Positions 24,399-64,000 of a stretch of 64,000 bases of DNA are shown here, piece by piece. Made by a program: the position numbers and the translations under genes. The notes under the pieces were generated by a model. The model was not told where the DNA came from and did not search any database. It worked only from the letters and a program-made list of their open reading frames with translations. The stretch's first letter is position 1, and the number at the start of each line of letters is the position of its first letter. The stretch is from the NCBI GenBank assembly GCA_047495785.1, contig JBLDXI010000011.1, positions 868,001-932,000 of the forward strand, in the 5' to 3' direction. Source of the stretch: Lepidodermella squamata. Lineage: Eukaryota > Animalia > Gastrotricha.

Positions 24399-27203
24399 TT
24401 ACATTGCTTGAGGGTTGTGAGGCAAACAGTCAACAATGAGGTGCATGTGATCGTTGGAGTGAGGAATAATTGGAAATGATCTTTTTACATGTAATTCCTT
24501 CCATGAAACTATAGAAATTTTTTTCATGTCACCGGTTACATGATAAGAGAAGTAGCGGCGGAAGAAGCGCTCGATGGTCAGTTCAACAACAACGAAAAAA
24601 ACGTCATCATCAATAGAGTAAATGCACTCAATTTGGTGAAAAGTAGGTCGATTGGGACTATTAAACCAGCCGACACTCGGCTTCGAAGTAGTAATAGCCG
24701 AGCCGATTACAAAAAAAGCTCCTTTATAGCGAATCGAATTACGCACGACAGCTCTTTCAGGTAGACTCAAAGCAGAAACGTCAAGGTAGCTCAAATATTC
24801 GGTTAGATTTTTCTCTTTTCCTCCATCAATCAATTTCAGCGAATCAGTCGAATTCAAGAATCTTTTCGATTGATATTTTGCACAGTTAAAAATTTGAGAA
24901 ACAGGATTATGGTAATTTTTTGGTTCAATTTTACAGAGACCTCGCTCGAAGCCAAGAGACGAGTAGAATCGCGCAGGTCCGTATTCACGCATTTGCTGCG
25001 GATAATGAACAAGGTTGTGAAGCTTTGTTACAACAAACGACTCGCCATAAGTTTCAACGGACAGTTGCAAGAATCGAAAGATCAAGTTTTCAAGGATAGG
25101 TACATCATCAAGAAACACAAAAGGCGAATAAATGAAAGATAAAATCTTGTTTAAAATCTGAAGCACATGGTATTCCTTCGAATCAAAAAACATTGGTTTC
25201 TGTTTCAGACAAGTAAAATCTAGAATAAATCCTAGCCGGGTCATTAGAATTCGCATTTGCGTCGCCGTCTGATGACAGTGAATTTCGCCGGACGTCACCG
25301 TGAAATTTGGTGCCGGAATCGCCTCATGTTTGGCTGTGTCGTCGAAGTCGAATTGCTCGATTGCGCTGTTCATCGCGTCATCCGTCAGCCCGAAGCTGGT
25401 CTTGGCCTTGGTAAGGGCTCCGTTCAAAACGTAGACGCAGACACCCTCCAGTAGGTCATGGGCTGGCTCACTGACTACGCACGCTGGGAATCGCGGGCCC
25501 AGGTGCGGTGACTCGGCCAAGATAGAGAGTACGCCGCTCAACCCAGTTTCGGTCATCCTGATTAGAGGAAAATAAAAAAATTTAAGGAGGACGATTTTTC
25601 AACAATTTTCAACAATTTTTTCACATAATAAATGGAAAAAATTTAATTAAATTAAATAAAATGAAACAATAAGGAAAAATTGATATAAGCTAATTTTTAC
25701 TTTCAATCAGCAAATAATTCTAATTTTTTTTTAATTTTGGAATAATTGACAATTTTTCTTTCAATTTGGAGGAAATTTATCTATATTCTAAAATAGAGCT
25801 GTGTCGGTTTCAATTCTAGATTCCCGGTCCGGTTCTGTTCAACGATTCTGGAGGACCGGACCGAGTTAGCCGGGAGAACCGGCGGTTGACCATAATAACT
25901 GAAGTGTGCGAAAATTTGATGAAAATACTTACAACGCCCTCATCTCCGTAACATTCGGCGCATCTGAAATCCTTCGCGATTGAACAACCATAGTTTCCGC
26001 GTTTCGTAGTTTCAGGTTCGTAGCTTCGAAAACGAGGCCGAATTGCCCGCGCGGTGTTTCACATTTCGAACACGTGAGATGAGCCCGAAAACTTTCGAGC
26101 ATGCCGATGATTTGATGCTGAGCCAAGTTATCGCCGAGAAAACTCACGACGATAATTCTAACTTCTTTGCCTTGAACGATGATGGTGGTTTCGAGATCTT
26201 TCTCAACCGCCTTGATGACTGAATTCAGGGCTGAGTAACAACAGGACTTGTATGACACGATTAGCTAATTCGGAAAAAAATTACCTGCTGTTTTTCTCGT
26301 TTCCTTAGGTAGCTCGCAGCTCTTCGAAGCGGCGAGTAGAAAATGGAATTCAGGGCTGAAAAATAGGGAAATTAGAAAAAAATTAAAAAAAATCGAAGGG
26401 TAGTCTCACATTTGTTCGAACATTCTGGCGATCATCTTCCATTCGAAAACGGCCAATTTTTGCTTCTTCACGTAAGTTCCAAGAGCGGAAACCGATACGA
26501 ACTCGTCAAAGAAGAGAAAAAGTGGGACAATAAAATCCTCATTAATATCGATGATAATTTCTCGAACTGCCGAGCCATCAAGAGGTGATGTTAAAAAGCC
26601 GTCGGATTCTTGTTGCAATAAACTCGTTTTGCTGAAAATTTGCAGTAAATCCGGTTTCGAGTTTAGAAAGTGGCTGATTTGTTTAGAAATCGGTAGGTAC
26701 TGGAAGGTTTCGACGGCCTCAGGTTGACAAGGCGCCAAGAATGATAGAAATTTTCCGCGGTTGTGAGTCGAGAGCATATTTTTGAAAATGTTATCGAATG
26801 GAAGAGACCAAAATCCACCGATGTAGTGTTCCAGCAATTTTCGAACGCATTGGGCGAGGAAATCGACAACAAAACAAACAAGAGTTTCAGTCGCCATGAA
26901 ATCGAATTTCAACTTGAAAATAAACTCGAGAAGCGATGAATTCAAATTCTCAGTCAAAATATCTTCAATATCGAGCTTATGACGGACAGGCTCATCTTCC
27001 ATTTGCGTGGCATCATCAATCCCATCAACAACAGGCGCATGCGTTAAGATCGGCTGTTGGTCACATTTTCCGACTGGCGCACTTTCGTTCGAACGAGGCA
27101 AGCAAACGTGTTGGTTGAACATGTGTTGAGAGGTGAATGTAGCCTTGCAGTCACATATCCATTCAGCTTTTTTAACTCTTGTAAACGAAAATGAAGAAGC
27201 CAT
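24399..27203 (-). CDS. EnSpm-type transposase, ~773 aa: exons 27203-26410, 26355-26285, 26230-25933, 25557-24399
   Basis: Open spliced frame. N-terminal CxC..H..C finger; LFFDEF..ALG..KQKL, GDNLAQH..G..ESF....CSKC, HDLLEG and KLHNLVHY......GP......FE motifs. Confidence 0.88.
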
Positions 27204-37698: not shown

Positions 37699-39748
37699 AA
37701 ATTTAATTTTTAAAAACAGTAATTGAACGAGAGTTAATTATGCATTCTGGTACCTTATTCCATACTTTGTTAATTCTGTTGCCAATACAAAATCTTCGGG
37801 GATCGGAGCGACATTTAGAAGGAACTATGCAGTGTTTCGCCTTTCTAGTGTTAGTAGAATTTTCGAACAAAGATGAAAAAGAGACATCAACAAAATTGTG
37901 GTAAGCTTTGAAACAAAACAACAAATCACGTAAAATTCTACGATGTTCTAATCGTAGTGTACCAGAGTGTTTGCACGCATCATCGTAGCTCAAGGTTGGA
38001 AACACAGCTTTAAGAAATCTTTCTTGTATTTTTTCCAAATTGTCGATCGTTGTGAGAAAATAGGGGCTATACACAGTGGAACAGTAGTCCAGAATCGGTA
38101 AAACATAAGTTTTAAAAGCCATTATCTTTAATCGATTGCATCTGAAACTCTTCAAAATAGCAGAGCATAAACTTGAGCACCGGTTCATAAGTGTAGCACA
38201 ATGTTGCGTGAAGCTTAGATCCTTATCAACAACAACGCCTAGGTCTTTAGTAGACTGTACAACGCGAATAGGTATCTTATTTATAGTATAGTCTGTCGAG
38301 ATTTCATCGCTTGCTCCGATTCTCATTACACAACATTTTTCACAATTTATATCGAGACCATTTTCATTAAAACAAGAAATGACGTTGCAAAACACATTTA
38401 TCTTCATTTTTCACAATCGGTCTGAACACTTTGTTGTCATCAGCGAAAAAAAATAAGGGAGACTCGACTTTTGTGTCGATATCGATAGCTATAAGAAATA
38501 TAATAAAAAGAAGCGGTCCAAGAACTGAGCCCTGAGGCACACCTGAGTTCACATTTCTCCAACCTGACATACTGTTACCTATTTTAGTTCGGAACTTGCA
38601 GTCTAAGAGGTACGACTTTAGCCACGCGAGTAAGTTTCCGCATATGTTGAAGCTCTTAAGAGCACTTATTAGCTTGAAAATAGGAACAGAGTCGAAGGCT
38701 TTCGCCAAATCAAGGTAAATTATGTCTACGGGTATATTATTGTCTCGGTAGAACGTGAATTTATTGAGACAGATTAAGAGCAATAGTTCAACATTTCGCT
38801 TTTCCAGGAAGCCGAACTGGTTAGGCGGTATCACATTATTTCTTTTCAGATACTCAGTAAGAATATTTTTTATAATTTTTTCTTGCAATTTGCAGATCGT
38901 TCGTGGCGCGGAAGAACCAGCACTTTAGGCAAAAAAACTCGTGTACACAAGAGTACAGTATATTTATTCTGTACAAACTGGTACAGTTTTGATGGCCGTA
39001 AATGTCAGTACAGCTCATTCGACTGTAGATTGAGTACAGTTGACCAGGCTGTATATTAGATGTACAGCGTTTCATTCCTGTATCATGGCGTACAGCTCAT
39101 TGAGCTGTACGCCCAAGTACAGTCGAATGCAACGTACATGCTGAGTACAGGAGTGACAGCCGTAATGACTGTGTACGGTTCGTCTAAACCGTACACGAGA
39201 GTACAGGAGATTCATTTTTATAACGTAGTCGATGGAAGTTACGGCCCGCAAACCCACTCACAATTAGATTGACGATTTTGGTGAAAGAGTGAGAATCGGA
39301 CGAATGTGCAGGTAATTAATTATTCGACGCGACGATTGCGACGCGACGATAGACGCGACGATAGACGCGACTTCCATGTTTCGTTGCTCACATAAGAAAC
39401 TTGACAAATGATTTCAACCTCTACTCCACCTTCTCAGACAAATGAAAATTGGGCGTTGAGCAATAACGATTATAAGTAAGTTGTTTCCTTTTCAAACTCC
39501 TGTGAATAAAAAGTAGGACCGAAGTCACTTGTCACGTCTAATATACGATAAATAAGTCATCGTTTTTGATGGTAATAAAGCGCATTTTTAGCAGAAAGAG
39601 CAACTCGTGTCAAAATAAGGAATATAATCACACTTCATATTTCCTTCATGGTGACGATATATCCTATTTTTTCTTCACAGCCCGTTGCCGATATTACCAT
39701 TGCAAACGATTGTTCACATTTTTCGTGATTTTAGGTAAATTTTCTGAA

Positions 39749-40782
39749 ATGACTGACTCAATAGTAAAAGTGACTATCGGCGAGTCAAAGTGGGCACGTT
39801 GCGTTAGAATGAATAGTTCCGCGGAGAACCCTTTAGTATTTTTAAAAACGAAAATCTACCCCGTCTTCCGCAACATCTTTAAAGCTGACGACTATGGCCT
39901 TTTTTGGCATGATGGTGATCATTTCGTCATCATTGATGACGATGATGACCTCCTGCTAGCGTTTCACTTGAATCCAGAGCGCCTTCATATATCAGTCTTT
40001 TTTGGACGCTATCTCGAGGACCTAATGACGCTACAGCCATCTTTGTCGCAAAAGGTCGAGGACTTGACGAGAATGATTTCAGGTATTTGTGAATATTTTT
40101 ATCGAATATATCCTAGGTGGAAGTTCCTCTGATTTTCAAATTTTATGCTCAAAAGGAGAAAGTTTTCAGGACAGATCTTCCTAGTTTAGGTTAAATGTAA
40201 GCTGAATTGCTGGAAAAATCGCAAATTTATCCCAGTTTTTCGCAGCGCTAGGGTTCAGATTGTTTATGCATATTTCTTTAATTAAATGTCTCTAATTTTG
40301 CATAAGAATTACAAACCGAACCTAAGCCGTCGCCGGCCCAGACGCCTTTCAATGCGCCACCTCTGAGTTTAGGTGCGTCACAGTCTCACCTACCCATTGT
40401 CACCGGTACCAGTGGCTCCAGAGCGGCACCGCAGACAGTTGTTGATCGGACTGGGTCACTTTACGACAAAGTCAAGGAAGTCCCGCTCCTAAAGGCGGTT
40501 GCTAGGACAATGGATGAGCGCCGGGACCTTGGGGAGCCAGGCTACGTCAGGTCAACAACTGAGCACTTCCACCAAATACTCAAGGAGATGGGTACTTGCT
40601 TCGAAGAGTCCTTTGGGGGACGTACCGTCACTAATGTGATGAGCAAAATGAACCAATACAGGGTAAGGCAGTCCTAGTCTTGCTGAAGGCGTGGTTGCGA
40701 GTTTTTGTGAGGTTTTAAAATGGAATGAGGTGGAAATTACTTTAAATCTTCTTTTATATAACCAATTTCTTAGAGGTTTTAA
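39749..40782 (+). CDS. Sola gene A, ~230 aa, PB1-like + Myb/SANT-like: exons 39749-40082, 40307-40662, then 40774-40782 (or unspliced stop at 40677)
   Basis: LFWHDGDHFVIIDDDDDLLLA resembles the acidic OPCA motif of PB1 domains. Exon 2 (absent from the ORF track) ends ...FEESFGGRTVTNVMSKMNQYR. Confidence 0.7.
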
Positions 40783-40791
40783 AATATCGAG

Positions 40792-41163
40792 ATGGCCGCC
40801 ATGGAACTTGATGAAACTACTGCTGAGTCTGAGTTGCGCCTAACGCGAAGCGAATGGCTTGAGTTGGAAAAATCTAAGAAAAAAACATCTAGAAGCTTGA
40901 GAGTCAAAGGCCAACGACGAGTTATGGGTAAATTTGTTGGGAAAAAACCTCATCGAATCGGTTTTCGCCGAAAGTGCCGCTTGTGCGATAAAACATTTTT
41001 CGATTCATCCGGTTTGAAAAAACATTTACAATTGTATTGCAAAAAAACAGGCAGCTTAGCTCTTACTGAGAAGGAAATTGAAGAATTGATTTATTGGTCA
41101 AAAAAAAATTATTTTGTCAAACAAAATGAGGCACCCAAGAGGCGATCTAGTATGAAAAATTAG
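40792..41163 (+). CDS. Basic zinc-finger ORF, probably the first exon of the Sola transposase
   Basis: CRLCDKTFFDSSGLKKHLQLYC. It joins the transposase frame through intron 41150-41216 only if the A9 run at 41100-41108 is one base shorter. Confidence 0.6.
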   Translation: MAAMELDETTAESELRLTRSEWLELEKSKKKTSRSLRVKGQRRVMGKFVGKKPHRIGFRRKCRLCDKTFFDSSGLKKHLQLYCKKTGSLALTEKEIEELIYWSKKNYFVKQNEAPKRRSSMKN

Positions 41164-41216
41164 CCGATGAGAACTAAAAATGATGCATATTGAACTTGAT
41201 TATTGTTTATCTTTAG

Positions 41217-43452
41217 GACTTTATTTTGTCTACCTTAATAATGTCGAGCAATTCTCATTCTGATGTTAGCGCGACTTGCTCGTCGTGCTTGGGCTCTGCT
41301 GTTGGCAATGTATTGAGCAGAATGCTGGACAACCTCTCAGTTGTTTCCGCAACGTCAACGCCTTCTCAAATGTCGAATATTTCAGAAATTTCGAATGCTG
41401 ACTATTTGCCTTCATTCATTTGGCCGAAAACTGAAGAAAGTGACGCGACCCTAGACTCTTCCTCCGATATAGCTAGAAACTTGAAACCCGGTGAGCCAGA
41501 TCGAAACGTCCTGTTTCCACCGCTTCGGCCATTTTTATTTTATCATTGCAAGTGCCCAAATCGTTGTAAAGACTATTTTCCTCAGCAAAATGTCCGCCGG
41601 CTATATGACGCTTTTCAAAACAGCAATTTAGATGACCGGCGCAGCTTCATAATTCGCCAAGTAATACCTCGACGTGGTCCTTCGAAACACCACACTTTTC
41701 AATTCGATGGCGCGTTTTCGAACAAGGCTTCGGCCGGCAACATTCGCGTGTGTTCGAAGTTTTTCCACAGCGCCCTTGGCCTTTCCCCGCGCAACTTCGT
41801 CGAGTGGACTTTAAAGAATAAAATTGGCGATCTAGGTTTCGCCAAGCCGGATGAACGAGGTTGTCAGCCCAATCCTAACGCAATCTCAAACGAACAGTTT
41901 GATCACTGCTGCAGGTAATTCCTTCCGGTCGATTTATGAAAACATTTATTTGCAAATTATTACAGATTCATTGATAGCTATGAGCGTGCACCCGGTCATT
42001 ATGTCCGAAAAAATTCCAGAAAAGTTTATATCCAAGGAGACATAACGCAGCGAGAAATGTTCGATGCATATTTGAGGCACTTTTCAACTCTCTCAGCGGG
42101 CCTATACCCACTTGGCTTCTCTTCCTTCAAACGGGTTTTACGCGAAGCCTACCCCGAACTGTCTTTGAAATTAACCAAGAAAGACAAGTGTTGCAAATGC
42201 AGAAAATTTAGATTGCGGCTACGCGAAAACAGAGTTGACGAGAGGCGCAAATCTATCTTCCAGGTGCATTTATACATGAAGAACGCTGCTAGGCGAGCTT
42301 GCAAGGCCGATACGAAAATGGCCCAAGAGAAATCGGAGGTTGTCGTGATACAGCTAGACTATGAAAAAGCATTGTTAAGCCCGGCTATTTCCGATGCAAA
42401 CTATCACTACAGGAAAATGAAAACTTGGAATTGCGGTATTTTTGCGATGTTTATATATATTTTAAATATATATTATATCTGTTGCAGTGATTTATGAAAT
42501 GGTGTCTAAGAATGCGTTTTGCTTCATGTCCGATGACATTGACCTTGAACACCCTGACGGTAGCTCCGCTGGATCTGCGTTATATGCCTATATAACCAAG
42601 TATTTACCGGTTCACCATCCGAACTGCCGTACGCTGATCATATATAGTGACAACGGCACAGGGAACCACAGCAGCTACTTCGCAAACGCCGTCATGTTCG
42701 CATTGGAAAACACAACATCACAGCTCCAATCGGTCCATCACAAATTTTTCCAAGCTAATCATACAATGATGGTCGTTGACCATTGTCATTCGTAATTTAT
42801 GAATAAAAAATTGGCCGTTTTTCAACTTTTCAATTTTGTCAGATTGATTGAGCGAAGAGGCAGCCGGCATTCCATCAATTTCCCTACAGACTGGCGAGAA
42901 GTCGCCCGAATTTGTCGCCCTGAACAACCATTTTTCATTCACGATTTGTCTTGGGATGAGCTCCTGGATTTCCACGGCGAGCCAAGCTTCACATCAAAGC
43001 TTCGGAAGCCAAAAAACTGGAGAATGAGCAACAACCTCAACTGTGACCTTTTCGGGATTGGAACCAAGCCTAGCACAAAAAGCGATTATTTACCATGGTC
43101 GGAAGGCGTTTGGTTCAGATATCGAAAGGGGACGAAAGCTGTCTTTGTTCGAGACGGCTACGAAGCGAAATGGCCTTGGAAGATGTACAGTCTATCGAAA
43201 AATTCGCTCAAAAAAGTACCAGTAGGAATTCCCCCGAAACTGAGAAAGTCCCCTCTTCCACTCCCTTACCCTTTGATGGCTGACATGCTTGAGATGCTGA
43301 AGAACGAAATTATACCGAGGTCATATACCGAGAAGATTCTTGATCTTCCTTATCAGCCGTGGAATGGCAAACAATCCGACAAGCGTGCAATATTTGAGAG
43401 CTTCAATGTTAGAAAAAATTCAGTGCCTTATGATTCAGATTTTGATGATTGA
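41217..43452 (+). CDS. Sola1-type DDD transposase core: exons 41217-41914, 41966-42435, 42488-42791, 42843-43452
   Basis: VCSKFF..ALG, GHYVR, DKCCKC, LDYEK.L.SP....YH.RK...WN, YSDN, KFF..NHT...VD motifs; introns of 51, 52 and 51 nt keep the frame. Confidence 0.87.
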
Positions 43453-43949
43453 ATAAAAGATACCTAATTTCTATATTTGTATGATATAACATGAGTAGGA
43501 ATCTATATTTGAGTGAAGCACGAAATATAGATCGAGTAAAGCGAATGAAACGAGTGAAATCGAGGCGGAGCGAGCCGGTAGGCGAGCGGAGACGAGATTT
43601 CACGAGGTGAATTAGTCGAACCTAATCACTAATCAGTCAATCAAATTACGTAATAGATAAAACAGCCGAATAACCACTATACTTTGCGTTCACTTGCTGA
43701 CGAAATATCGCGAAAAATGGGAATTTAAATTTGAGTAAACATTTGGATCGAAAATAATTGGTGGCATCCGCTAAGCTATAAGTCTAAGGTCTTCGCATCT
43801 GCAACTGCAGGGATCTGAAGCTGAACTGAAGGGATCTGAAGCTGAAAACTGCTATCCCGATCAAGATAAATAAACTTTACCAAAGAATACGGCACAGACC
43901 ATATACCGTACTTGAAGTGCGACATCGTCTTCTGTATTTCGCATGTACA

Positions 43950-44085
43950 CTATCTTCTCTCCTGTACTTGAAGTACAGTATCTCTCCTGTACTTGAAGTA
44001 CAGTATCTCTCCTGTACTTGAAGTACAGTATCTCTCCTGTACTTGAAGTACAGTATCTCTCCTGTACTATAAGTACAGTATTTGA
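43950..44085 (+). repeat. 25-bp tandem repeat TCTCTCCTGTACTTGAAGTACAGTA (~5 copies), Sola subterminal region
   Basis: Seen directly; each unit contains the inverted repeat CTGTACTT-G-AAGTACAG. Confidence 0.9.
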
Positions 44086-46699
44086 GCCGTATGCATGAGT
44101 ACTGCCCGATCACTACAGTACTAAGCAGTACGGTCAGGCGTGCCGTACTGGGGTGTACAGCTAATTTCAGCTGTACAGCGAGTACAGCGCGCCGACTGTA
44201 CTTTATTTTACAGTCGGTTTGAGCAGTACTGCTGTTTTACAGAGCCATGGACTGTACATTTCGGTACTGCTGAACAAAAAAAATAAGCAAAGTGCTGGTT
44301 CTTCCGCGACACGAACGAGATGTTACTGGTAAGACTGATAGGCCGGTAATTTTTAGCTTCCAGCCGAGATCCGCTTTTCTTGTAGATAGGAATAACATCT
44401 GCCACCTTCCAAACGTCAGGTAGCTGACCTGAGAGCATAGAAGAGTTGAAGATGATAGAAAGAGGTACAGAGAGAGAAGTAGCGAGATTTTTAAGTAAAA
44501 ATTGAGGCAGATTGTCAGAGCCACCGCCCAATTTTGGCTTCAAGTTGGAGAGATACAGAGATACAGTATATTCGTCGAACTGAATGTGTTGTAGGCAGTC
44601 ATTTGTAATCTTGTTATTATAACTGGCCCCCTCCGTAGATAAAGGCCTAAAATTCGCAGAGAAAGTGTCGGCAAAAAGCTCAGCCTTGTCTAAATCGCTA
44701 ACGACAATTTTTTCTTTCGATTTCATCGCTGAGGGCACAGACGATTTGTTTTCTTTCAAGAAATTTGATACGAATTCAAAGATTTTTTTCGCTGAACCAT
44801 TTTCCAGAAGATCGTTTTCCCTTTGATACTGAAATTTTAGCATTTCTTTTTTGAAAGAACTTTCCGCCGCTTTGAACTTGTTTCGCGCATCGGCATCATT
44901 TAGCTTGTTTTTCAGATATTTGCGATACGCTCGCTTCCTTTTATTTTCTAACGAGCTCGCTTTATTTTTGGATTTGCGGCGCCTTCTGGAATTCAGTTTT
45001 AAATTCCTGCGCGGAGAAAATTGAATAATTCCTCTATACATGATATCCAAAAACGCTGAGTAATTTTCGTCTACGCTAGTAGATTTCAGAATTTCCTGCC
45101 AGTCATACATTTGAAGATATTCTGAAAAAGCAAAGAAGTTAGTGTTTCTGATATCAAAAACGCCATTGATGTCGTTTGAGACGGAGGGCGGTTTGTTTAC
45201 AATGTTTAGATTTATAATCATTGTATCGTGATCGGTTTTAGGTAAGGGTGTGAGTACGGTGATATTTTCTACAATGTCGCGAGATTTAGTTATGACCAGA
45301 TCAAGAATGTTTTTCCCAGCGCGAGTAGGTTTTTCTACATTTTGAACAAGATTAGTGTGAGTATTTACAACACCGAGAAGATAGTCAAAGAGGTGTTTAG
45401 TTGCCAAGTCTGAAGCGTACATCGAGCGATAGCAATAGGTTAGTTCTCGGCGCCTCACCTCAGAGGTCGTTGGAGACCACTTTCAGGAATTTTTTGGGGG
45501 GTGTTTTATTCCCGATACCCCCAACCCCCCACCCTGACCGCGCCCTGATTTCAACCAAAAAACGTGCGAAGCGAGGAAATATTTAATATTTTTTACTAAA
45601 AACCGCTCTGAAACCTGTTAAAATTGACTAAACAGAAGGCGAAAGTTAAGTTTCAAGCTGAAAGTGTTAAAAAAGCATGTTCTATAGCACTGAAAACGTT
45701 GATAATAAGTTTTTACATGTTTTTGCCTTCCGACCCATGCGACCCGCAGTCTTCCTAGCGACCCATCAGAAAATCCTCTGCGACCCTATTTTGGGTCGCG
45801 AACCCCCTCATGAGAACCGCTTTAACTCAATCTCAATGTAGATCCATGTCATTGCACAACATCACCAGTGATATAGTACGGATGCTAAGGAACATACTTT
45901 GATCTCAAGTTAGATTTCACTCAGATAACAAGCAGTGTACGCCGAGAAAGGGTCTATGTATCTATGAATGGAGGTAACTTTACTTACCTTAATCTCAACT
46001 TAGATGTATGTCATTGCACAACATTAACATTAAGATGCACAATACTCATACTCATATTCATTTTTATTGCAAATTATTTTTCGTCAGTTAGAAAATAGTC
46101 AAGTTTAGTTTAGCAGAAAGTTGTTTCTTGGCGCCTCACCGCAGAAGTCACGCAGTTTTCCAATGAAGCCGAATTAATTTTTAGATATTCACTGAAAGCC
46201 CTGTGAGAGTTGTTAACCACGCAAGACAGCAGACGGTTCCACGCAGCACGCACGCGCCTGGAACAGCTGAATTTATACTAATTAGCGATAGGATCTTAAG
46301 CCCTCACATCCTCTTTGCATTGAGATGGAGATTAGAGATGTCTTAATCCTGTTCAATCTTGACTCCCTGATATTATAGATGTTACGATCGACTCATGTCA
46401 ACTTTATCTTCCCCGGAAAGACACTATACTGAGATGCATATAATCTTTAGAATGTTAGAATCATCTGTAGCAAAAGATCTATATTGTGATTTAGATACCC
46501 AATACCCACCTATCGTTCAAATGCATGTGAAATGGAAAATTGGGAACGTGAGTAATATTCATCAGTCGCCTCACAATCGCTTCAATGACAAGGCCTTGAA
46601 AAAAGCCCGTTTGCTTCGAAAAAGAAATGAAAAATGTCATCAAATTATTTTAGGAATAATCAAAAATAACAATGAACTCAAATTCTCATTCTCAAATTA

Positions 46700-57204: not shown

Positions 57205-58452
57205 CCGACAGACAAGAAAACCTGTTCACTTTTTTCCTCATTAATATTCAGAATATTTTGTAGCTTATAAAAAATAATATGACGGGGCTCAATTCGAATT
57301 TGATTACTTATTAAAATCTTAAAAATTTAAAATTAATTAGTTCAAGTTTCAAAGATCGCAAACAGTAGTGATTTGGCGCGGTTTCCGAGACGCTACAAAG
57401 AGACCTCTTTAAAGCCTCTTTAAAGATGAAATGGCAGCATCTGCTCAAAATTACACAGAAATTCGGTCGTTCTATAATGGGGCAAAAAATTGTTTACTTT
57501 CTCCTATCAGGTTGATTTTGGTGTCAAAATGTACCTCTCGTCAAGTGGAGTGTAAAAAGCATTACAGCCAATCCCGAGGCAGTCACTCCCTTTCTTAATT
57601 TGCGTCCCGAAGAAAAAAATTCTTGGACCCAGACCTACACAATATAGCATGGGAAAGATGTGTTTTTTAAGTTTTTCATGGATATAGAAATAGTCGATTT
57701 GTGATAGAGTTCAGGGATTAAATAGTCGATTAGTAAAGTCGACAAGCGCTATCGATGGTGCTATCGATTTGACCGTAGCTATTACGTAACCCGTAGATCT
57801 GATTTTCTATGGACCCATGATTCTTTTTGACCGATGTTGAAATTTTCAATATTAGAAAATAAATTTAACATATAAATTTAAATATTTTAGAAATACAGTG
57901 AGTTTCAGAATTATGTGCCCAGTACTTCCTTGTTTGTGTAGTTTTTTCTTATGTTGTGAGTATTCACCACATTCACAAAGCTGTTGCTATCATTATTACC
58001 AGCTCACCAATACGCATATACGCACAACGTGGAGAATTAAGCGATTTTTTCGATAATATCGCGAGGACTGACTCTCTTAACCAGCAAATGCATTCATATC
58101 AGAGCTGGAAGCCATAATCCGAATCATTAATTAATATTAGGTTTCAATTTAGATTAATAGCCATCTTCTAAAATTAATTTAAAACCGCTTAAATTGGGAG
58201 CAAGCACTCCCATAGCGGATTAAGTTGATTTTATGGAATAAAAAGAAATCACCTATGGTTCTTACATCTCCTTATTCATCTCGAAATTGCAAGAACATTT
58301 TAATTTCATGATGAAATATCGCATTAAAAATTTGAAACACTGAACTTTGCCCCTTATTAGTCTGACTACAGTTTTTCGTGTCCGAAAACCTCGTAGTGCG
58401 GCGTCCTATCTACGTCACATAAGGTTTTTCTGTTGAAAAGACATATTACGAA

Positions 58453-58520
58453 TATTTCGGTACTTTTTCGGTAGTACTACCGAAAAACTACCGAAATACT
58501 ACCGCACGACTACCGCAAAA
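58453..58520. repeat. 46-bp near-perfect palindrome plus ACTACCG repeats
   Basis: Perfect 24-bp core TTTTTCGGTAGT|ACTACCGAAAAA at 58464-58487. Confidence 0.9.
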
Positions 58521-58820
58521 GAAGAAAATGAAGATCAGAGTAAGAATACATGTTTCCTGCGGCGATGTGTCTATTTTATCGATGAAATATATTTATTGTC
58601 TCATTTACGCTAAGTTATTTACTAAATCGTTGAAAAATAAAATTAGTTTCAAGAATTTAGCGGTAACAGTTTTGCGCCTCGTGGAGGGCTAAACGGGTAA
58701 ATGTAAGGGGCGTGATGTTGTCATGTGTAGCTGTTTCACAGGAGCGGCGTCGTGGTTTGATAGCTATCTTCTAACCTATTTGACGTTGCAATGTCCTGTT
58801 TTAAGATTTTTCTGTTCTAG

Positions 58821-59727
58821 ATGACAGCGGCTAAAGTATTTTGTGTCATTATTTCGGAGGAGAGTCCGCTGAGATTGGCGGAGATTGTCAAAGGCAACAG
58901 TTTGGCAGTTGTGCGGGAAGCTCTCCGGGTCATTTTGCTACCTAAGGTTGAGTCCGTAGAGCTCTACTACGAGGTCTCGTTTTGTTTCGCGCGTCCTTTT
59001 ACAGTTGTTGCAGTTTTCATCATTTCAGCTAGACGATCGGACCGATGTGCTCATAGGTACTGATGATTGCGTCAACCGCATGGTTGATATGCATCTTCTT
59101 TACAAACCAGAAGAGCCTGCCTGCATGTATCTCTGCCCAGCGAGAGCCAGAGTAGAGGAAAGTGCTATTCTGCGTCCCGCTCAGACATCATCGACTTCCA
59201 CTTCTGGGGCCGGCTCCACGTTGAACTTTAACATGGGGCCTTTAAAGACTCCGAAGCCGCAATCTTCGCAACCTATTGTCAGAAAGCGGTTATTTGAGAA
59301 GCACAAAGTTCGCTTCGAAGAAAGTGAGGATGACGATGATGACGAAGATCCGCCGAGATACAGGTAAGAGAGTTGCGGCCTCTTCGTTTAATGATTTGCT
59401 TCATGCGTCATCTCCAGGTATCCTAGCAAATGGGCTACGCCTTGCAAGTAATACTTTTTGATGCTTCGAGTTCTTTTATCAATAATTGTATCTCGTATCA
59501 GACGACTGACTAGAAAGCGAACGAAGTCGTCTATTTTGCGACAGGGTGAGTACACGACAGTGGAAGAAGACGCTTGTCAGGCGATTGCTGATTACTTGAA
59601 CAAGAAGGGAAAAGTGCTGACAGAGGCAACTTTCTTCGAGGCAATGGCAGCTTTAAAAATGCATTTTGAGGATATCTTTGGTAGCCGAAAGGTAGCCAAC
59701 ATATTGAAAAAGATGGGAGAGCTATAG
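58821..59727 (+). CDS. Recombinase-element gene A, ~247 aa, PB1-like + Myb/SANT-like: exons 58821-58973, 59029-59363, 59418-59447, 59502-59727
   Basis: Introns of 55, 54 and 54 nt give an open frame. LYYELDDRTDVLIGTDD is OPCA-like; GEYTTVEE....IADY...FEDIFGSRKVANILKKM is Myb/SANT-like. Confidence 0.72.
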
Positions 59728-59783
59728 TTGACTGACACCTGTTGAAGAACGAGATGACACCTGTTGCATTTCTTATTTTTAGA

Positions 59784-62168
59784 ATGTCTGTTGTTAAACT
59801 GAAATATGGTTCGCACTTGAAACTTGCAGAGATTACCGAGGAAGATTCATTTGAATCCCTCCGGTCTCAAGCCACGCAGTTATTTGGCATTGAGGAACAA
59901 AGCGTCAGATATTCTTGGGGTATATTTGATATTTGAACTCGAAGTTTGAGAAGTGATCAAACCATCCGTTTTTCCATTAGTCTGTGATCCTGATCCCATT
60001 GTTTTGGACGAATTGCAGCTCAAGCTGGCGATGAAAACCGGGAGCCTGCTCACAATTGAATTACTAGCTAAGAATAGTGACGTTACGAAACCTCGAAAGA
60101 AAGCCAACCACAAAAGTAAATCTCAACTTCGAATCAATGGGCGCTTCACGAAACAAAAAGTTAACTCGAAATCACGACACCCTGGTATAGGGCGGCCTTG
60201 TCCGAAGTGCGAAAAACCCCTTCGTGACAAAACGTCGCTTGAACGTCACCTGTTGTCCATATCTGCCTGTGTAGCTGGTCCGACAGAACCAACAAATCTG
60301 GCGTCATTGTTAGCTGAATCGAAGCGGTGAGTTTTCATACTGAAATTGTGTTGCGAGTAATTGATTAGATGACATCTAGGATTGCGCTATTGTCAAAACA
60401 TGAGAAGAAAAATGTGACGCGAATAGAAGAGGAGATTTTGCCGTCTTCCGTCGGCTTGCCTTCCTCGGTTAATGTGACCGTCAATAACTTCCAGAGCAGT
60501 TCACTTACAACCGATGATGTCGAAGACAAGCCTAAATCTGGTCGTGAAATTGAGCAATATTTGCACGAGTTTGGAAGATCTTTTGAAAACCCTATTTTCG
60601 GATCAAGTAACCGAGCTCGATCAACTATTAAAAAGATTATTGATGGCGCAAAACAAGTGGTCAAGCAGTGTGGCTACAAATTCATCGATGATCTTTATTC
60701 TCGTGAAGGATTCGAAGCTCTTCAGCGACCGTTCAAACGAGACATCATGTTTGGCACGAAGAAAGCTTTATGCCAAGCCTATCGAGAATTTGTGGAATTT
60801 CTGGAATTCTATGATGACATTAACGTTGACGAGCGTCGGAGAGTTCTGCTCCTATCGTTTTTGAAGAAGGCCTACGACTCCTTCAATCGAGGTGTTGCAA
60901 TCGATAACGCTGACCGCCGTGTTCGCATATCTGAAGCTATAAGGAACAAGGAGCTACCAACTTTCTCCGAAGTCTGCCTCGTTCTCGATGGCTTACGCTC
61001 TGTGGTAAATCAACGTGCGCTTTCAGTTCTTTCAACTGTGTATTATTGATTGCAGGCTGATGAATTGCGTGGGAAATCTAATATTGATGTTGACGACTTC
61101 AAAGTCTTCATCGGTTTCGTTGCTTTTAGCCTAGTCAAGCGTTGTGCTATTCGCCCTGGCGCAATGACCCTAATGACCATTTCCGAGTTTAAAAAGCCTG
61201 TGCTTGAGGGCAAAGGGGCTGTATTGGTCCATGTGAAGGGCCAGAAGGCTTCTACCTACAATGACGGGTTCGTTAACTATTCGGAGGAAGTTTACGACAT
61301 TTGCACCGAATATCTGGACAATTGGCGAATTCCGTCTTCGCTGCAGCACTTCTTCGTTTGGCCATCGACAAAAAAAGCAGTAACGTCGCAAGATCTGGGC
61401 AGAATTTGTAAAACGTTCTTCCACTATCATGTCAAAAAGGAATTTTGTTTTACCGACTATCGTCAGTATATACAGACCGTTTTTTCTCAGACTTGTTCGG
61501 ATGAGTCTGAGAAAAAATGGTTCAACCGAATTATGCAGCATAGGTAAGTAAGCTGTTAGCCCTATATTGATTAGTTTTATGCTTTTCATTTAAACAGTGA
61601 TGATGTCGGGCGCCAATATTATGAAATGGCTATGGCCCCCCAATTCCATGCGAAGATGGGCCGAAAAATCGAATCAGAGATGCTGATTCGAGAAAAAAAC
61701 TGGCTCGCAACAGGCGGTTACCTTAGTGAAACAGAAGGAGAGAGCGATGCGGAAGCCCTTACTCACCAGGCTGATACAGGTGTGGCTATACAGTCAAGGT
61801 TGTGTAAATCGTCGTGTAAGCAGCACTTGCCAAGGAAAGAAAAAGCCAGAAGCAACATTATCGACCTAGAAAGTTCTGCAGACTCCACCAGCGAGTATGC
61901 TGCTCCCAAGAGGAGGCGAGGAAGACCCCCTATGCGAAGGACTAGTGCTTCGAGTGCTGAAATTTCCTCCGAGAACAGTAAGGCAGAAGCCTCAGAGAAG
62001 AAGCGAGTAGTGCGAGTTGGTCGATCGACTTCGTCGCGCAGTTCGAGTGCATCTTCCGTCTCGACGAGCAGCACTGGCAGAAAACGAGGGAGGCCAAGAA
62101 AGTCATCCTTTAGCTCTAGAAGCTCGTCATTAAACTCTTCCGAAAAAGAACATGGTTCGAACAATTGA
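59784..62168 (+). CDS. Tyrosine recombinase, ~721 aa (PB1/ubiquitin-like, Zn finger, recombinase, AT-hooks): exons 59784-59919, 59981-60326, 60380-61004, 61056-61543, 61598-62168
   Basis: Candidate catalytic residues IRPGA (R), GQKAS (K), TDYR (R) and MQHSDDVGRQYY (H, Y; formed across the last intron). CPKC..RH...C finger; RRGRP and KRGRPRK AT-hooks. Confidence 0.87.
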
Positions 62169-62347
62169 AATAAACCAAAATCTGGGGTAAATTGCGATGT
62201 TAGGTAGACACGTGTTGTTGATTTGAAAATTACTTAAAGTTTATGAAGTTGATTGTTTTAATGACGCTTTAAAATGAATAATTTGATGAAATATCAATAA
62301 ATACTTGAAATCTACTTGGAGTATGAGGAGTAATTTTTGCGTTCGAA

Positions 62348-62403
62348 AACTACCGAAAAACTACCGAAAAACTACCGCATAAACTACCGAAAAACTACCG
62401 CAG
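62348..62403 (+). repeat. Five direct ACTACCG(A/C) repeats, 12-13-bp period
   Basis: Same motif and orientation as 58476-58516. Confidence 0.9.
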
Positions 62404-64000
62404 GAATCGGCACTGTGAGAGATTTTTTGAATTTTTTCCTTTGGAAAGCGTGATCTCTACAAATAAGCTGATCCACTGAAAAAATACGCTGAACATGGCG
62501 CATCTCATGGAGGCGAAATAACAAAATTAGCTAGTAGTAGGAATCGATGATCGGTAATCGATAATCAGTGATTTCTTCGGGAATGAATGAGTATAAAGTG
62601 ATTTTGACTCGAGATTTGAGTTCTACCGGTGTTATTCGGTCTTGGTGGATTTTTTAGAAGCACAGGTCTCGTGCAAAAAAATCGCAAAAAAGCAACACAC
62701 CCGCCTGCTCACATATGAGTATACGGCGATATCCTTCAAATTTGGTACTACTCATATGCGAGTATATGGCTATATTCTGCAAATTCAAGAATACTCACCT
62801 ATGAGTATATAGCCGTTAAAGTGGTAAGGGTAATTTCATGCTTGTGCAAAAATGGCATTCCCGTTTCCTGTCTCTGAGCAACTTCAATCCATCAGCGCTC
62901 AAGAAAAACGTGCAATGAACGATTGATCATCATCTTCGACTTCTTTACCTTGGTCTCTGCCATGTCTCTGGCATTGACAAGCTCTCTTCGCAACAAAGGA
63001 AAAAGATTGAGAAGCCACGCTGTCGTAATTTTTTTTATTTACTTTCTATGGTCAATGCGCCGAAGTAAAATGTGTACCTTTTCTGTTGTTTTATTAATAC
63101 AACGCTCTTTTATTAGGAGAAGAAGTGGCATTGAAAAATTGTTATAATTAAAAATAATAATTATGATTCCTTGTCATAAAAATCCCGTCAACATGACATT
63201 TTTCTCACCTAAACATGTCATGTTAATTGTTGATTGTAAAGTTGTATTGTCTTTAAGCTTAGCTGTTGTGTAAACTGCAATGTTTCGCTCCATTTTAGCT
63301 TCAACTATTAACTCAGTTCTGTCTGACACTGTTTTGAGTGCGGTGAGTCCGAAACCTTTCTTTTTCTTTCATGTCAGTTACAGTTGCAAAGTTGCAAGGC
63401 TGACCGATGAGGCGGACTGATTGTGTAGATCTTCGACTACTGCAACGTCTGGTAAGAGCTTGATGCCCGTCTTCAGAGCAGTGCCCTTCAAAGATGTCTC
63501 CACTTTGGCTTTAGCCAAAGTTTGACATGACATTGTCTTGTGTTTCATTATTTCGTAGCTCGTTTTGCAAATAGACCAATTAATTGATACAGTCAGCCCC
63601 CGCTATAACGCAACTTGTTATAACTATAAGTTTTGTTGGCGCGCAACATTTTCGGCTATTTGAGATTTTTGAATCTCAAATTAGGCAGCCTTTTTCAGTT
63701 GATCGCTGCTCACTTTTTGCAGTATACAGATTATTACTTTAATCAAGTGATTTCTTCGCGACCCAAAAAGCAAAAAATCGCGATGAGCTCGGAACACATA
63801 AAAATACTAGCGTGTCAGATCTACTGTATTTATTGCACATTTTCCGGCTCGCCGGTGTTTCCTCCGCGCGCGCGCTCCCCGAACTGAAATTTTTGGGTAA
63901 AATGTTTGAAGTCAAGCCGTGTAAATTCAAATAATTGCGGGTTTTCGGAACTAAACGGATGTAAGTGGTCGAAATTTCGTTGATGTAAGTAAATGTAAGG

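Follow-up and report, generated by a model that had tools for sequence, protein, structure and literature searches.

Genes that lie close together on one strand and are separated at the RNA level by a spliced leader (SL) are known from the operons of Caenorhabditis, Oikopleura and Ciona (PMC1488885, PMC7986045); in Caenorhabditis the published intercistronic distance is about 100 nt, in Oikopleura 23-30 nt (PMC1488885). A comparable layout is found on two mobile elements in a 64,000-nt stretch of the 121-Mb genome of the gastrotrich Lepidodermella squamata (assembly GCA_047495785.1, contig JBLDXI010000011.1, positions 868,001 to 932,000; G000:C11:868001-932000), hereafter the window. One element encodes a tyrosine-recombinase-like enzyme and the other is a Sola-like transposon, and in each of them a helper gene (gene A) precedes the enzyme gene (gene B). 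The real feature of the two is an intercistronic 3' splice site in a two-gene transposon, a known arrangement on an unusual carrier, which is probably resolved by a leader. As in the SL-resolved operons, the genes share a strand and lie 43-194 nt apart, an unpaired 3' splice site stands just 5' of the downstream ATG (in the Sola-like element a nearby donor exists) and both window elements have one poly(A) signal, placed behind the last gene. The carriers differ in being mobile elements and not host housekeeping genes, and the upstream gene mostly has no poly(A) signal of its own.

Other described elements share parts of this design. Two-protein DNA transposons are represented by PIF/Harbinger, in which the transposase is accompanied by a separate Myb/SANT-like helper (PMC13668399, PMC9710019). 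The small helper of the present elements may likewise end in a three-helix bundle of HTH (helix-turn-helix)/Myb-like shape, with weak fold matches (Z 3.5-4.5), whereas the enzymes are a tyrosine-recombinase-like protein or a Sola-like transposase and not a Harbinger DDE enzyme, the helper carries a PB1/ubiquitin-like head, and the two genes are tandem and abutting instead of independent units. Cryptons (PMC3212892) resemble the recombinase element as DNA elements without long terminal repeats, with a tyrosine-recombinase-like core-binding fold, R ... HxxR motifs and introns. Animal Cryptons, as described, have neither terminal repeats nor a second gene (PMC3212892), whereas here a helper gene is present, each end bears a phased 11-bp array and no Pfam recombinase or DUF3504 match was obtained. 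With the Sola superfamily of DDE transposons (PMC4455052) the second element shares cut-and-paste movement, inverted repeats at its termini and a target duplication of 4 bp.

The junction between A and B was compared in nine copies from about eight lineages of the same helper and enzyme families in this genome. Single exons served as input to all searches and folds, and reading frames across the junctions were computed by a local script. An acceptor was defined as a YAG with at least 8 pyrimidines in 12 positions, and all ATGs of the window, examined for such a site within 15 nt upstream, provided the background. By this comparison all of the recombinase lineages (8 of 8) have a full 3' splice site, that is, a pyrimidine tract and a YAG, 0-13 nt before the ATG of gene B; in the background the share is 170 of 2187 window ATGs (7.8%). 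These eight starts represent 6-7 independent lineages with protein identities down to about 30%, and in five of them the sequence is AG, one purine, ATG. The Sola-like gene B has ttcttag 18 nt upstream of its ATG and a second AG abutting it. Gene A starts carry acceptor-like sites as well, 0, 14 and 12 nt upstream by the same criterion and, judged by eye, 9-12 nt upstream in L049 and L050, two relatives of the window recombinase element. A donor to match the acceptor of gene B is another matter: none is usable in L052, and none is consistent among the other recombinase lineages.

Within the recombinase spacer of the window the 12-mer TGACACCTGTTG occurs twice (59733-59744 and 59755-59766; 0.27 matches expected by chance), and both motif and acceptor are kept in the L049 spacer (L049:3734-3747) despite saturated synonymous sites. 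The motif holds a TGAC 25-30 nt before the AG, at the position of a branch site. It also contains an E-box, and its role could be that of a branch site, of a signal for splicing or of a promoter element.

Spacers measure 43-61 nt in four recombinase lineages and 166-194 nt in three; the short ones leave no room for a separate promoter. The first-pass annotation of this DNA had remarked on how little space there is for a promoter, and the 56 nt of the window recombinase element and the 114 nt of the Sola-like element bear this out. A scan for 12 poly(A) hexamers found none in the recombinase A-B spacer and, in the Sola-like spacer, weak variants only and no canonical signal. Signals of the poly(A) type do occur in A-B spacers elsewhere in the genome, namely AATAAA on contig C19 and AATATAAA on contig C15.

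The reading that we favour, with a probability of roughly 0.5, is that A and B are co-transcribed as an operon-like unit and that the mRNA of B would be made through the intercistronic acceptor, most likely by an SL added in trans. Transcription of both genes would start upstream of A and end at the AATAAA after B, A would be translated as the first cistron, and B would obtain its own mRNA through splicing at the complete 3' splice site 0-18 nt before its ATG. The likeliest route would be the addition of the host spliced leader in trans, as at downstream genes in animal operons. Co-transcription and the use of the acceptor are what we infer from the layout; the partner of the acceptor is probably a spliced leader, this being the simplest partner for an acceptor that has no conserved partner donor. 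A conserved acceptor also speaks for processing of the RNA and not for special decoding. The first-pass annotation had proposed a bicistronic mRNA decoded by stop readthrough, by termination-reinitiation or by SL trans-splicing at 59783 and 40774. Its bicistronic unit agrees with the short spacers (minimum 43 nt), the lack of a canonical poly(A) signal in the window spacers and the AATAAA after B, and since trans-splicing, which fits the sole feature kept in relatives, was among its three options, that interpretation is partly supported; decoding by readthrough or reinitiation fell away, as set out below.

Should the acceptor prove to be a site of leader trans-splicing, these mobile elements would bring their own two-gene operon along and rely on host-specific RNA processing. 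Their spread would then be tied to trans-splicing hosts, and the ratio of unprocessed to trans-spliced RNA would offer a simple handle on the dose of helper versus enzyme.

Several observations weigh against this reading, whose main rival has the splicing in cis. Rfam had no match over the window, and the Rfam SL1 model had none over the genome, an absence that says little because the control genomes gave none either; no paper on leader trans-splicing in gastrotrichs was found, and the protein collections searched contained no protein derived from a transcript of either helper. The window spacers also lack the signal marking the upstream gene's 3' end that characterizes an SL-resolved operon. 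In the Sola-like element AGG/GTAAGG lies just before the stop of A and could pair in cis with the acceptor, and weak donors elsewhere are not to be dismissed on sequence, since a gene A intron of conserved position in the window copy has the very poor donor GTCTCG. In both window elements, finally, strong donor-like sites stand 5' of the gene A acceptor, GTAAGG at -118 (near 58702) and GTAAGT at -273 (near 39475), so that a cis-spliced leader exon could serve both acceptors. A shared non-coding leader exon 5' of A would be joined either to the acceptor of A or, skipping A, to that of B. In maize En/Spm, TnpA and TnpD arise by alternative splicing, and retroviral subgenomic mRNAs are formed likewise, so that here too several proteins could come from one promoter by choice of 3' splice site; an upstream donor is not conserved across the present lineages. 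That A and B both start just 3' of acceptor-like sites would suit this explanation, as would the two upstream donors, similar ones being found on contigs C15 and C31. Yet neither L049 nor L050 has a GTRAGD donor in the 500 nt upstream of gene A, and the mean of 1.3 donors per 500 nt is near the chance expectation of about 0.7, which makes a cis-spliced leader exon an unlikely source of the B mRNA, though the most serious competitor of a trans-spliced one. Less likely still is a promoter of B's own in the 3' part of A or in the spacer, the acceptor then belonging to a short outron or to an intron of the 5' untranslated region. Internal promoters are known in nematode operons, the E-box-bearing TGACACCTGTTG is conserved in the spacers of the window copy and L049, and three recombinase lineages have roomier spacers (166-194 nt); but the 43-61 nt of four lineages are too short for a promoter and a leader, the motif is limited to one subfamily, and gene A has no canonical poly(A) signal in either window element.

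The remaining explanations concern the reading frame. The first-pass annotation had noted that, after splicing, A and B are in frame with a single TAA between them in both elements, and its letters and coordinates are correct. In the recombinase element A ends CTA TAG (59722-59727) and the string tttttag/A ATG leads into B, with the AG at 59781-59782 and the ATG at 59784, so that removing the 56 nt 59727-59782 leaves CTA TAA ATG (...GEL, stop, MSVVK). In the Sola-like element removal of 40663-40773 (111 nt) leaves AGG AGG TTT TAA (...YRRF, stop, NIE MAAME), with the TAA at 40780-40782 and the ATG at 40792. The recombinase donor GTTGAC is weak, as had been cautioned: scored by matches at the six consensus positions beyond GT it reaches 0/6. 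As a conserved pattern, the in-frame stop does not exceed chance, and neither frame nor stop is kept in the family copies of other lineages. The unspliced frame offsets of the nine junctions are 2, 2, 1, 0, 1, 1, 2, 2 and 0 (in the order of Table 1), and the two junctions that are in frame, those of L051 and the Sola-like element, hold 4 and 7 stops; the Sola-like genes share a frame even unspliced because the proposed intron of 111 nt is 37 x 3, with the 7 stops in between. A divergent Sola-like lineage (C34:7514-8414, C42:1711788-1712700 and C4:2864475-2866767, compared through match coordinates only) shows gaps of 244 and 256 nt from the aligned block of A to that of B, where the window copy has 156 nt, and offset 1. 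When each GT able to pair with the acceptor was tried in each lineage, a single in-frame stop after splicing was obtained in the two window copies only. The donor proposed for the recombinase element is the sole GT near the stop. In L052 the only spacer GT sits 17 nt from the acceptor, and in L049, L056 and L057 a GT overlapping the stop gives an in-frame join through a sense codon and not a stop. Such an overlap is seen in 2 of 8 lineages, as often as chance would place a G at the end of the last codon, and a conserved fusion or conserved stop created in this way was rejected on that ground.

Retroviral gag-pol readthrough and calicivirus-type reinitiation (PMC5009743, on recoding in general) resemble the present loci in that an accessory open reading frame (ORF) stands before that of the enzyme, and a low ratio of enzyme to accessory protein, as conjectured in the first-pass annotation, would be understandable here too; the frame and single stop, or the adjacent stop-start pair, that these mechanisms require are not conserved. 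Readthrough needs one frame and a single stop kept in relatives, and offsets and the 4-7 stops of the in-frame cases speak against it; reinitiation needs a conserved close stop/start pair, with an 18S-complementary motif upstream, and the unspliced distances are 43-194 nt, stop and start being brought together only by a splice that the two window copies alone allow. The proposal that a cis-intron sets a single stop beside the ATG of B, to be overcome by readthrough or termination-reinitiation, is permitted by the letters of those copies. Its segments of 56 and 111 nt are intron-sized, confirmed introns here measuring 51-61 nt, the Sola-like donor is good (4/6), and a UGGGA lies 7 nt 5' of the gene A stop in the recombinase element. 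Against it stand, besides the random offsets and the poor recombinase donor, the spacer of L052, which cannot hold an intron, the divergent Sola-like spacer, which is about 90-100 nt longer, and the absence of UGGGA from L049 and the Sola-like element. Because frames are random and a sense codon replaces the stop, outcomes that the first-pass annotation had itself named as refuting it, the recoding reading fails and is very improbable; the in-frame relation and the rebuilt TAA are accidents of the two window copies. The practical lesson is that an in-frame single stop is not usable as a recoding signature in these families. Splicing might also delete the stop of A, so that some B protein would carry the helper at its N-terminus. 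Stop-free in-frame joins can be drawn in the Sola-like element (40662 to 40792), in L049 (CT/GTAAAC ... TTTTAG/G) and in L056 and L057 (GC/GTGACT ... ATAG/A); the chance rate of GTs overlapping the stop, the lack of any such join in five lineages and the fact that database homologues of A all stop at the same place, while no homologue of B has the A domain, make a fusion protein the least credible of these explanations.

Judged from sequence comparison, gene A is genuine, and both elements carry the same one. A hidden Markov model (HMM) of the C-terminal domain, built from recombinase-family helpers only, matched the Sola-like gene A (E 1.1e-5), the sole match in the window outside the training set, and the same domain stands at the head of another recombinase family as well, a third and more distant one (L055, L056 and L057). 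Between the window copy and L049, which are 67% identical, synonymous divergence (pS) is 0.72-0.93, thus saturated, and nonsynonymous divergence (pN) 0.18-0.29, for gene A as for gene B; for gene A of the recombinase element the values are pN 0.20-0.29 and pS 0.82-0.93. A profile search of 1.84 billion representatives recovered only four true relatives of gene A, all of them unnamed metagenome ORFs, and all four terminate 0-7 residues past the same last C-terminal helix. Five relatives of gene B were found among 5.8 billion proteins, none with the A domain (0 of 5). Since the homologues of A end at the same place and no homologue of B has the A domain, gene A is taken as a separate cistron. 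The database homologues considered were P0001, P0003, P0004, P0006 and P0009-P0013; P0002 and P0005, long repetitive proteins that scored against the helper profile through many short repeats, were set aside as spurious. The C-terminal domain of the helper was modelled as a small helical bundle of four helices (predicted local distance difference test, pLDDT, 80.6). Its best fold matches are HTH/Myb-like with Z scores of 3.5-4.5, below the meaningful level and not significant (TetR HTH, 4.5; TRF1/TRF2 Myb, GT-1 and Zeste, 3.7-3.9). Foldseek found no match to this model, and the helper could not be named from Pfam, from a PDB sequence search or from the ESM Atlas; for the Sola-like helper, a word-based search of proteins with its exon 1 returned nothing.

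The enzyme of the recombinase element has no Pfam match, recombinase families and DUF3504 included, and no PDB sequence match; an exact look-up of a gene B exon found no match, nor did a scan of JGI metagenomes with the gene B alignment as query reveal a relative. In a model of the long single exon of its relative L051 the helical domain matches the core-binding domains of tyrosine recombinases (Z 9.6 for Brujita integrase, 8.5 for XerA, 8.0 for lambda Int and 7.4 for XerD); the model is poor overall (pLDDT 51), with a badly modelled catalytic domain. The motifs IRPGA and HxxR are invariant in gene B of the recombinase family. Given this model, the label of tyrosine recombinase is reasonable but not proven. 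No Pfam model matched the transposase of the other element; the name Sola comes from the first-pass annotation and rests here on the ends and the 4-bp duplication. The two enzymes have a zinc-finger start in common (40936-41028 in the Sola-like and 60160-60252 in the recombinase gene B; tblastx E 0.012), and exon 1 of the Sola-like gene B matches the recombinase copy L052 (G000:C3:517658-517882) with a genome-wide E of 4.4e-4. Given this shared start, the common front end may reach from the helper across the junction into the first part of the enzyme gene. It is conceivable, as a tentative extension that we hold less probable than the operon-like unit itself, that two unrelated enzyme classes carry a portable operon of helper, trans-splice acceptor and zinc-finger start, which would exploit the SL machinery of the host to obtain two mRNAs from one promoter and would have been exchanged between tyrosine-recombinase and DDE elements.

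Table 1. Features of the two window elements (window coordinates) and the A-B junctions compared
Feature	Position	Strand	Spacer, stop to ATG (nt)	Unspliced offset	Basis or content
Recombinase element left end	58449-58531	.			phased 11-bp CTACCG/CGGTAG array (families D1, I1-I4)
Gene A (helper), recombinase element	58821-59727	+			homology-based model
A-B spacer, recombinase element, 56 nt	59728-59783	+			12-mer pair, pyrimidine tract, TAG acceptor ending 59782
56-nt intron GTTGAC...TTTTAG of the first-pass annotation	59727-59782	+			donor unsupported, junction not conserved
Gene B, recombinase element	59784-62168	+			PB1-like start, C2H2 finger, tyrosine-recombinase-like core
AATAAA directly 3' of gene B stop, recombinase element	62169-62174	+			poly(A) scan
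Recombinase element right end	62346-62416	.			phased 11-bp CTACCG array
Sola-like cut-and-paste element, 5,420 bp	38898-44317	+			terminal inverted repeats, target duplication, empty sites
Gene A (helper), Sola-like element	39749-40677	+			homology; helper HMM match
Junction region, Sola-like element	40663-40791	+			donor-like AGG/GTAAGG at 40663; TAA 40780-40782
Gene B, Sola-like element (transposase, N-terminal C2H2 finger), several exons	40792-43452	+			sequence
AATAAA overlapping gene B stop, Sola-like element	43452-43457	+			poly(A) scan
Junction, window recombinase element			56	2	
Junction, L049			44	2	
Junction, L050			61	1	
Junction, L051 (L053 identical)			99	0	
Junction, L052			43	1	
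Junction, L056			166	1	
Junction, L057			191	2	
Junction, L055			194	2	
Junction, window Sola-like element			114	0	

The recombinase element extends from about 58449 to 62416 if the phased 11-bp CTACCG arrays are taken as its boundaries, and homology to L049 begins at about 58442. Arrays with an 11-bp period (TACGG/CTACCG) are found at the ends in two recombinase lineages, at 58451-58531 and 62346-62416 in the window and at L052:5750-5860 (G000:C3:519250-519360), and have the look of regularly spaced protein-binding sites. The coding blocks of its gene A are 58821-58973, 59029-59363 and 59502-59724, followed by the stop TAG at 59725-59727, and an acceptor, ttctgttctag, directly abuts the ATG. 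The first intron (58974-59028) shares its position with L049 and L050, its donor being GTCTCG here and GTAAGT there; either the helper gene of the window copy is splice-impaired or weak donors are tolerated. Internal introns of gene B include 59920-59980 and 61005-61055.

A target duplication of 4 bp is the rule in the Sola superfamily. The Sola-like element has terminal inverted repeats of roughly 28 bp beginning CGTTCGTG and is flanked by a 4-bp duplication, AGAT, at 38894-38897 and 44318-44321. It is nested in another repeat; in uninterrupted copies of that repeat the overlap at the insertion point is exactly 4 bp, and several empty sites were found (e.g. C50:407099-407674). Over the A-B junction at least seven genomic copies show 100% identity, and the family is therefore very young. 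Gene A consists of exon 1 (39749-40082) and an exon 2 that starts at 40307 and ends at 40662 if the GTAAGG donor is used, or else with the TAG at 40675-40677. Acceptor AGs in the junction end at 40773, 40775 and 40791, the intron of the first-pass annotation being 40663-40773, and choice of the AG at 40790-40791 would give an in-frame A-B fusion. Reverse-transcriptase ORFs flank the element (38367-38888 and 44208-45458). A further copy, L028 (G000:C26:423336-424619), bears an internal deletion that has removed the A-B junction and places helper exon 2 (residues 1-89 only) about 400 nt 5' of the last transposase exon. Elsewhere in the window, on the minus strand, an ATG-initiated ORF of 385 amino acids (24399-25556) has a start like those of the transposon genes, with a pyrimidine tract and, one base 5' of the ATG, a CAG.

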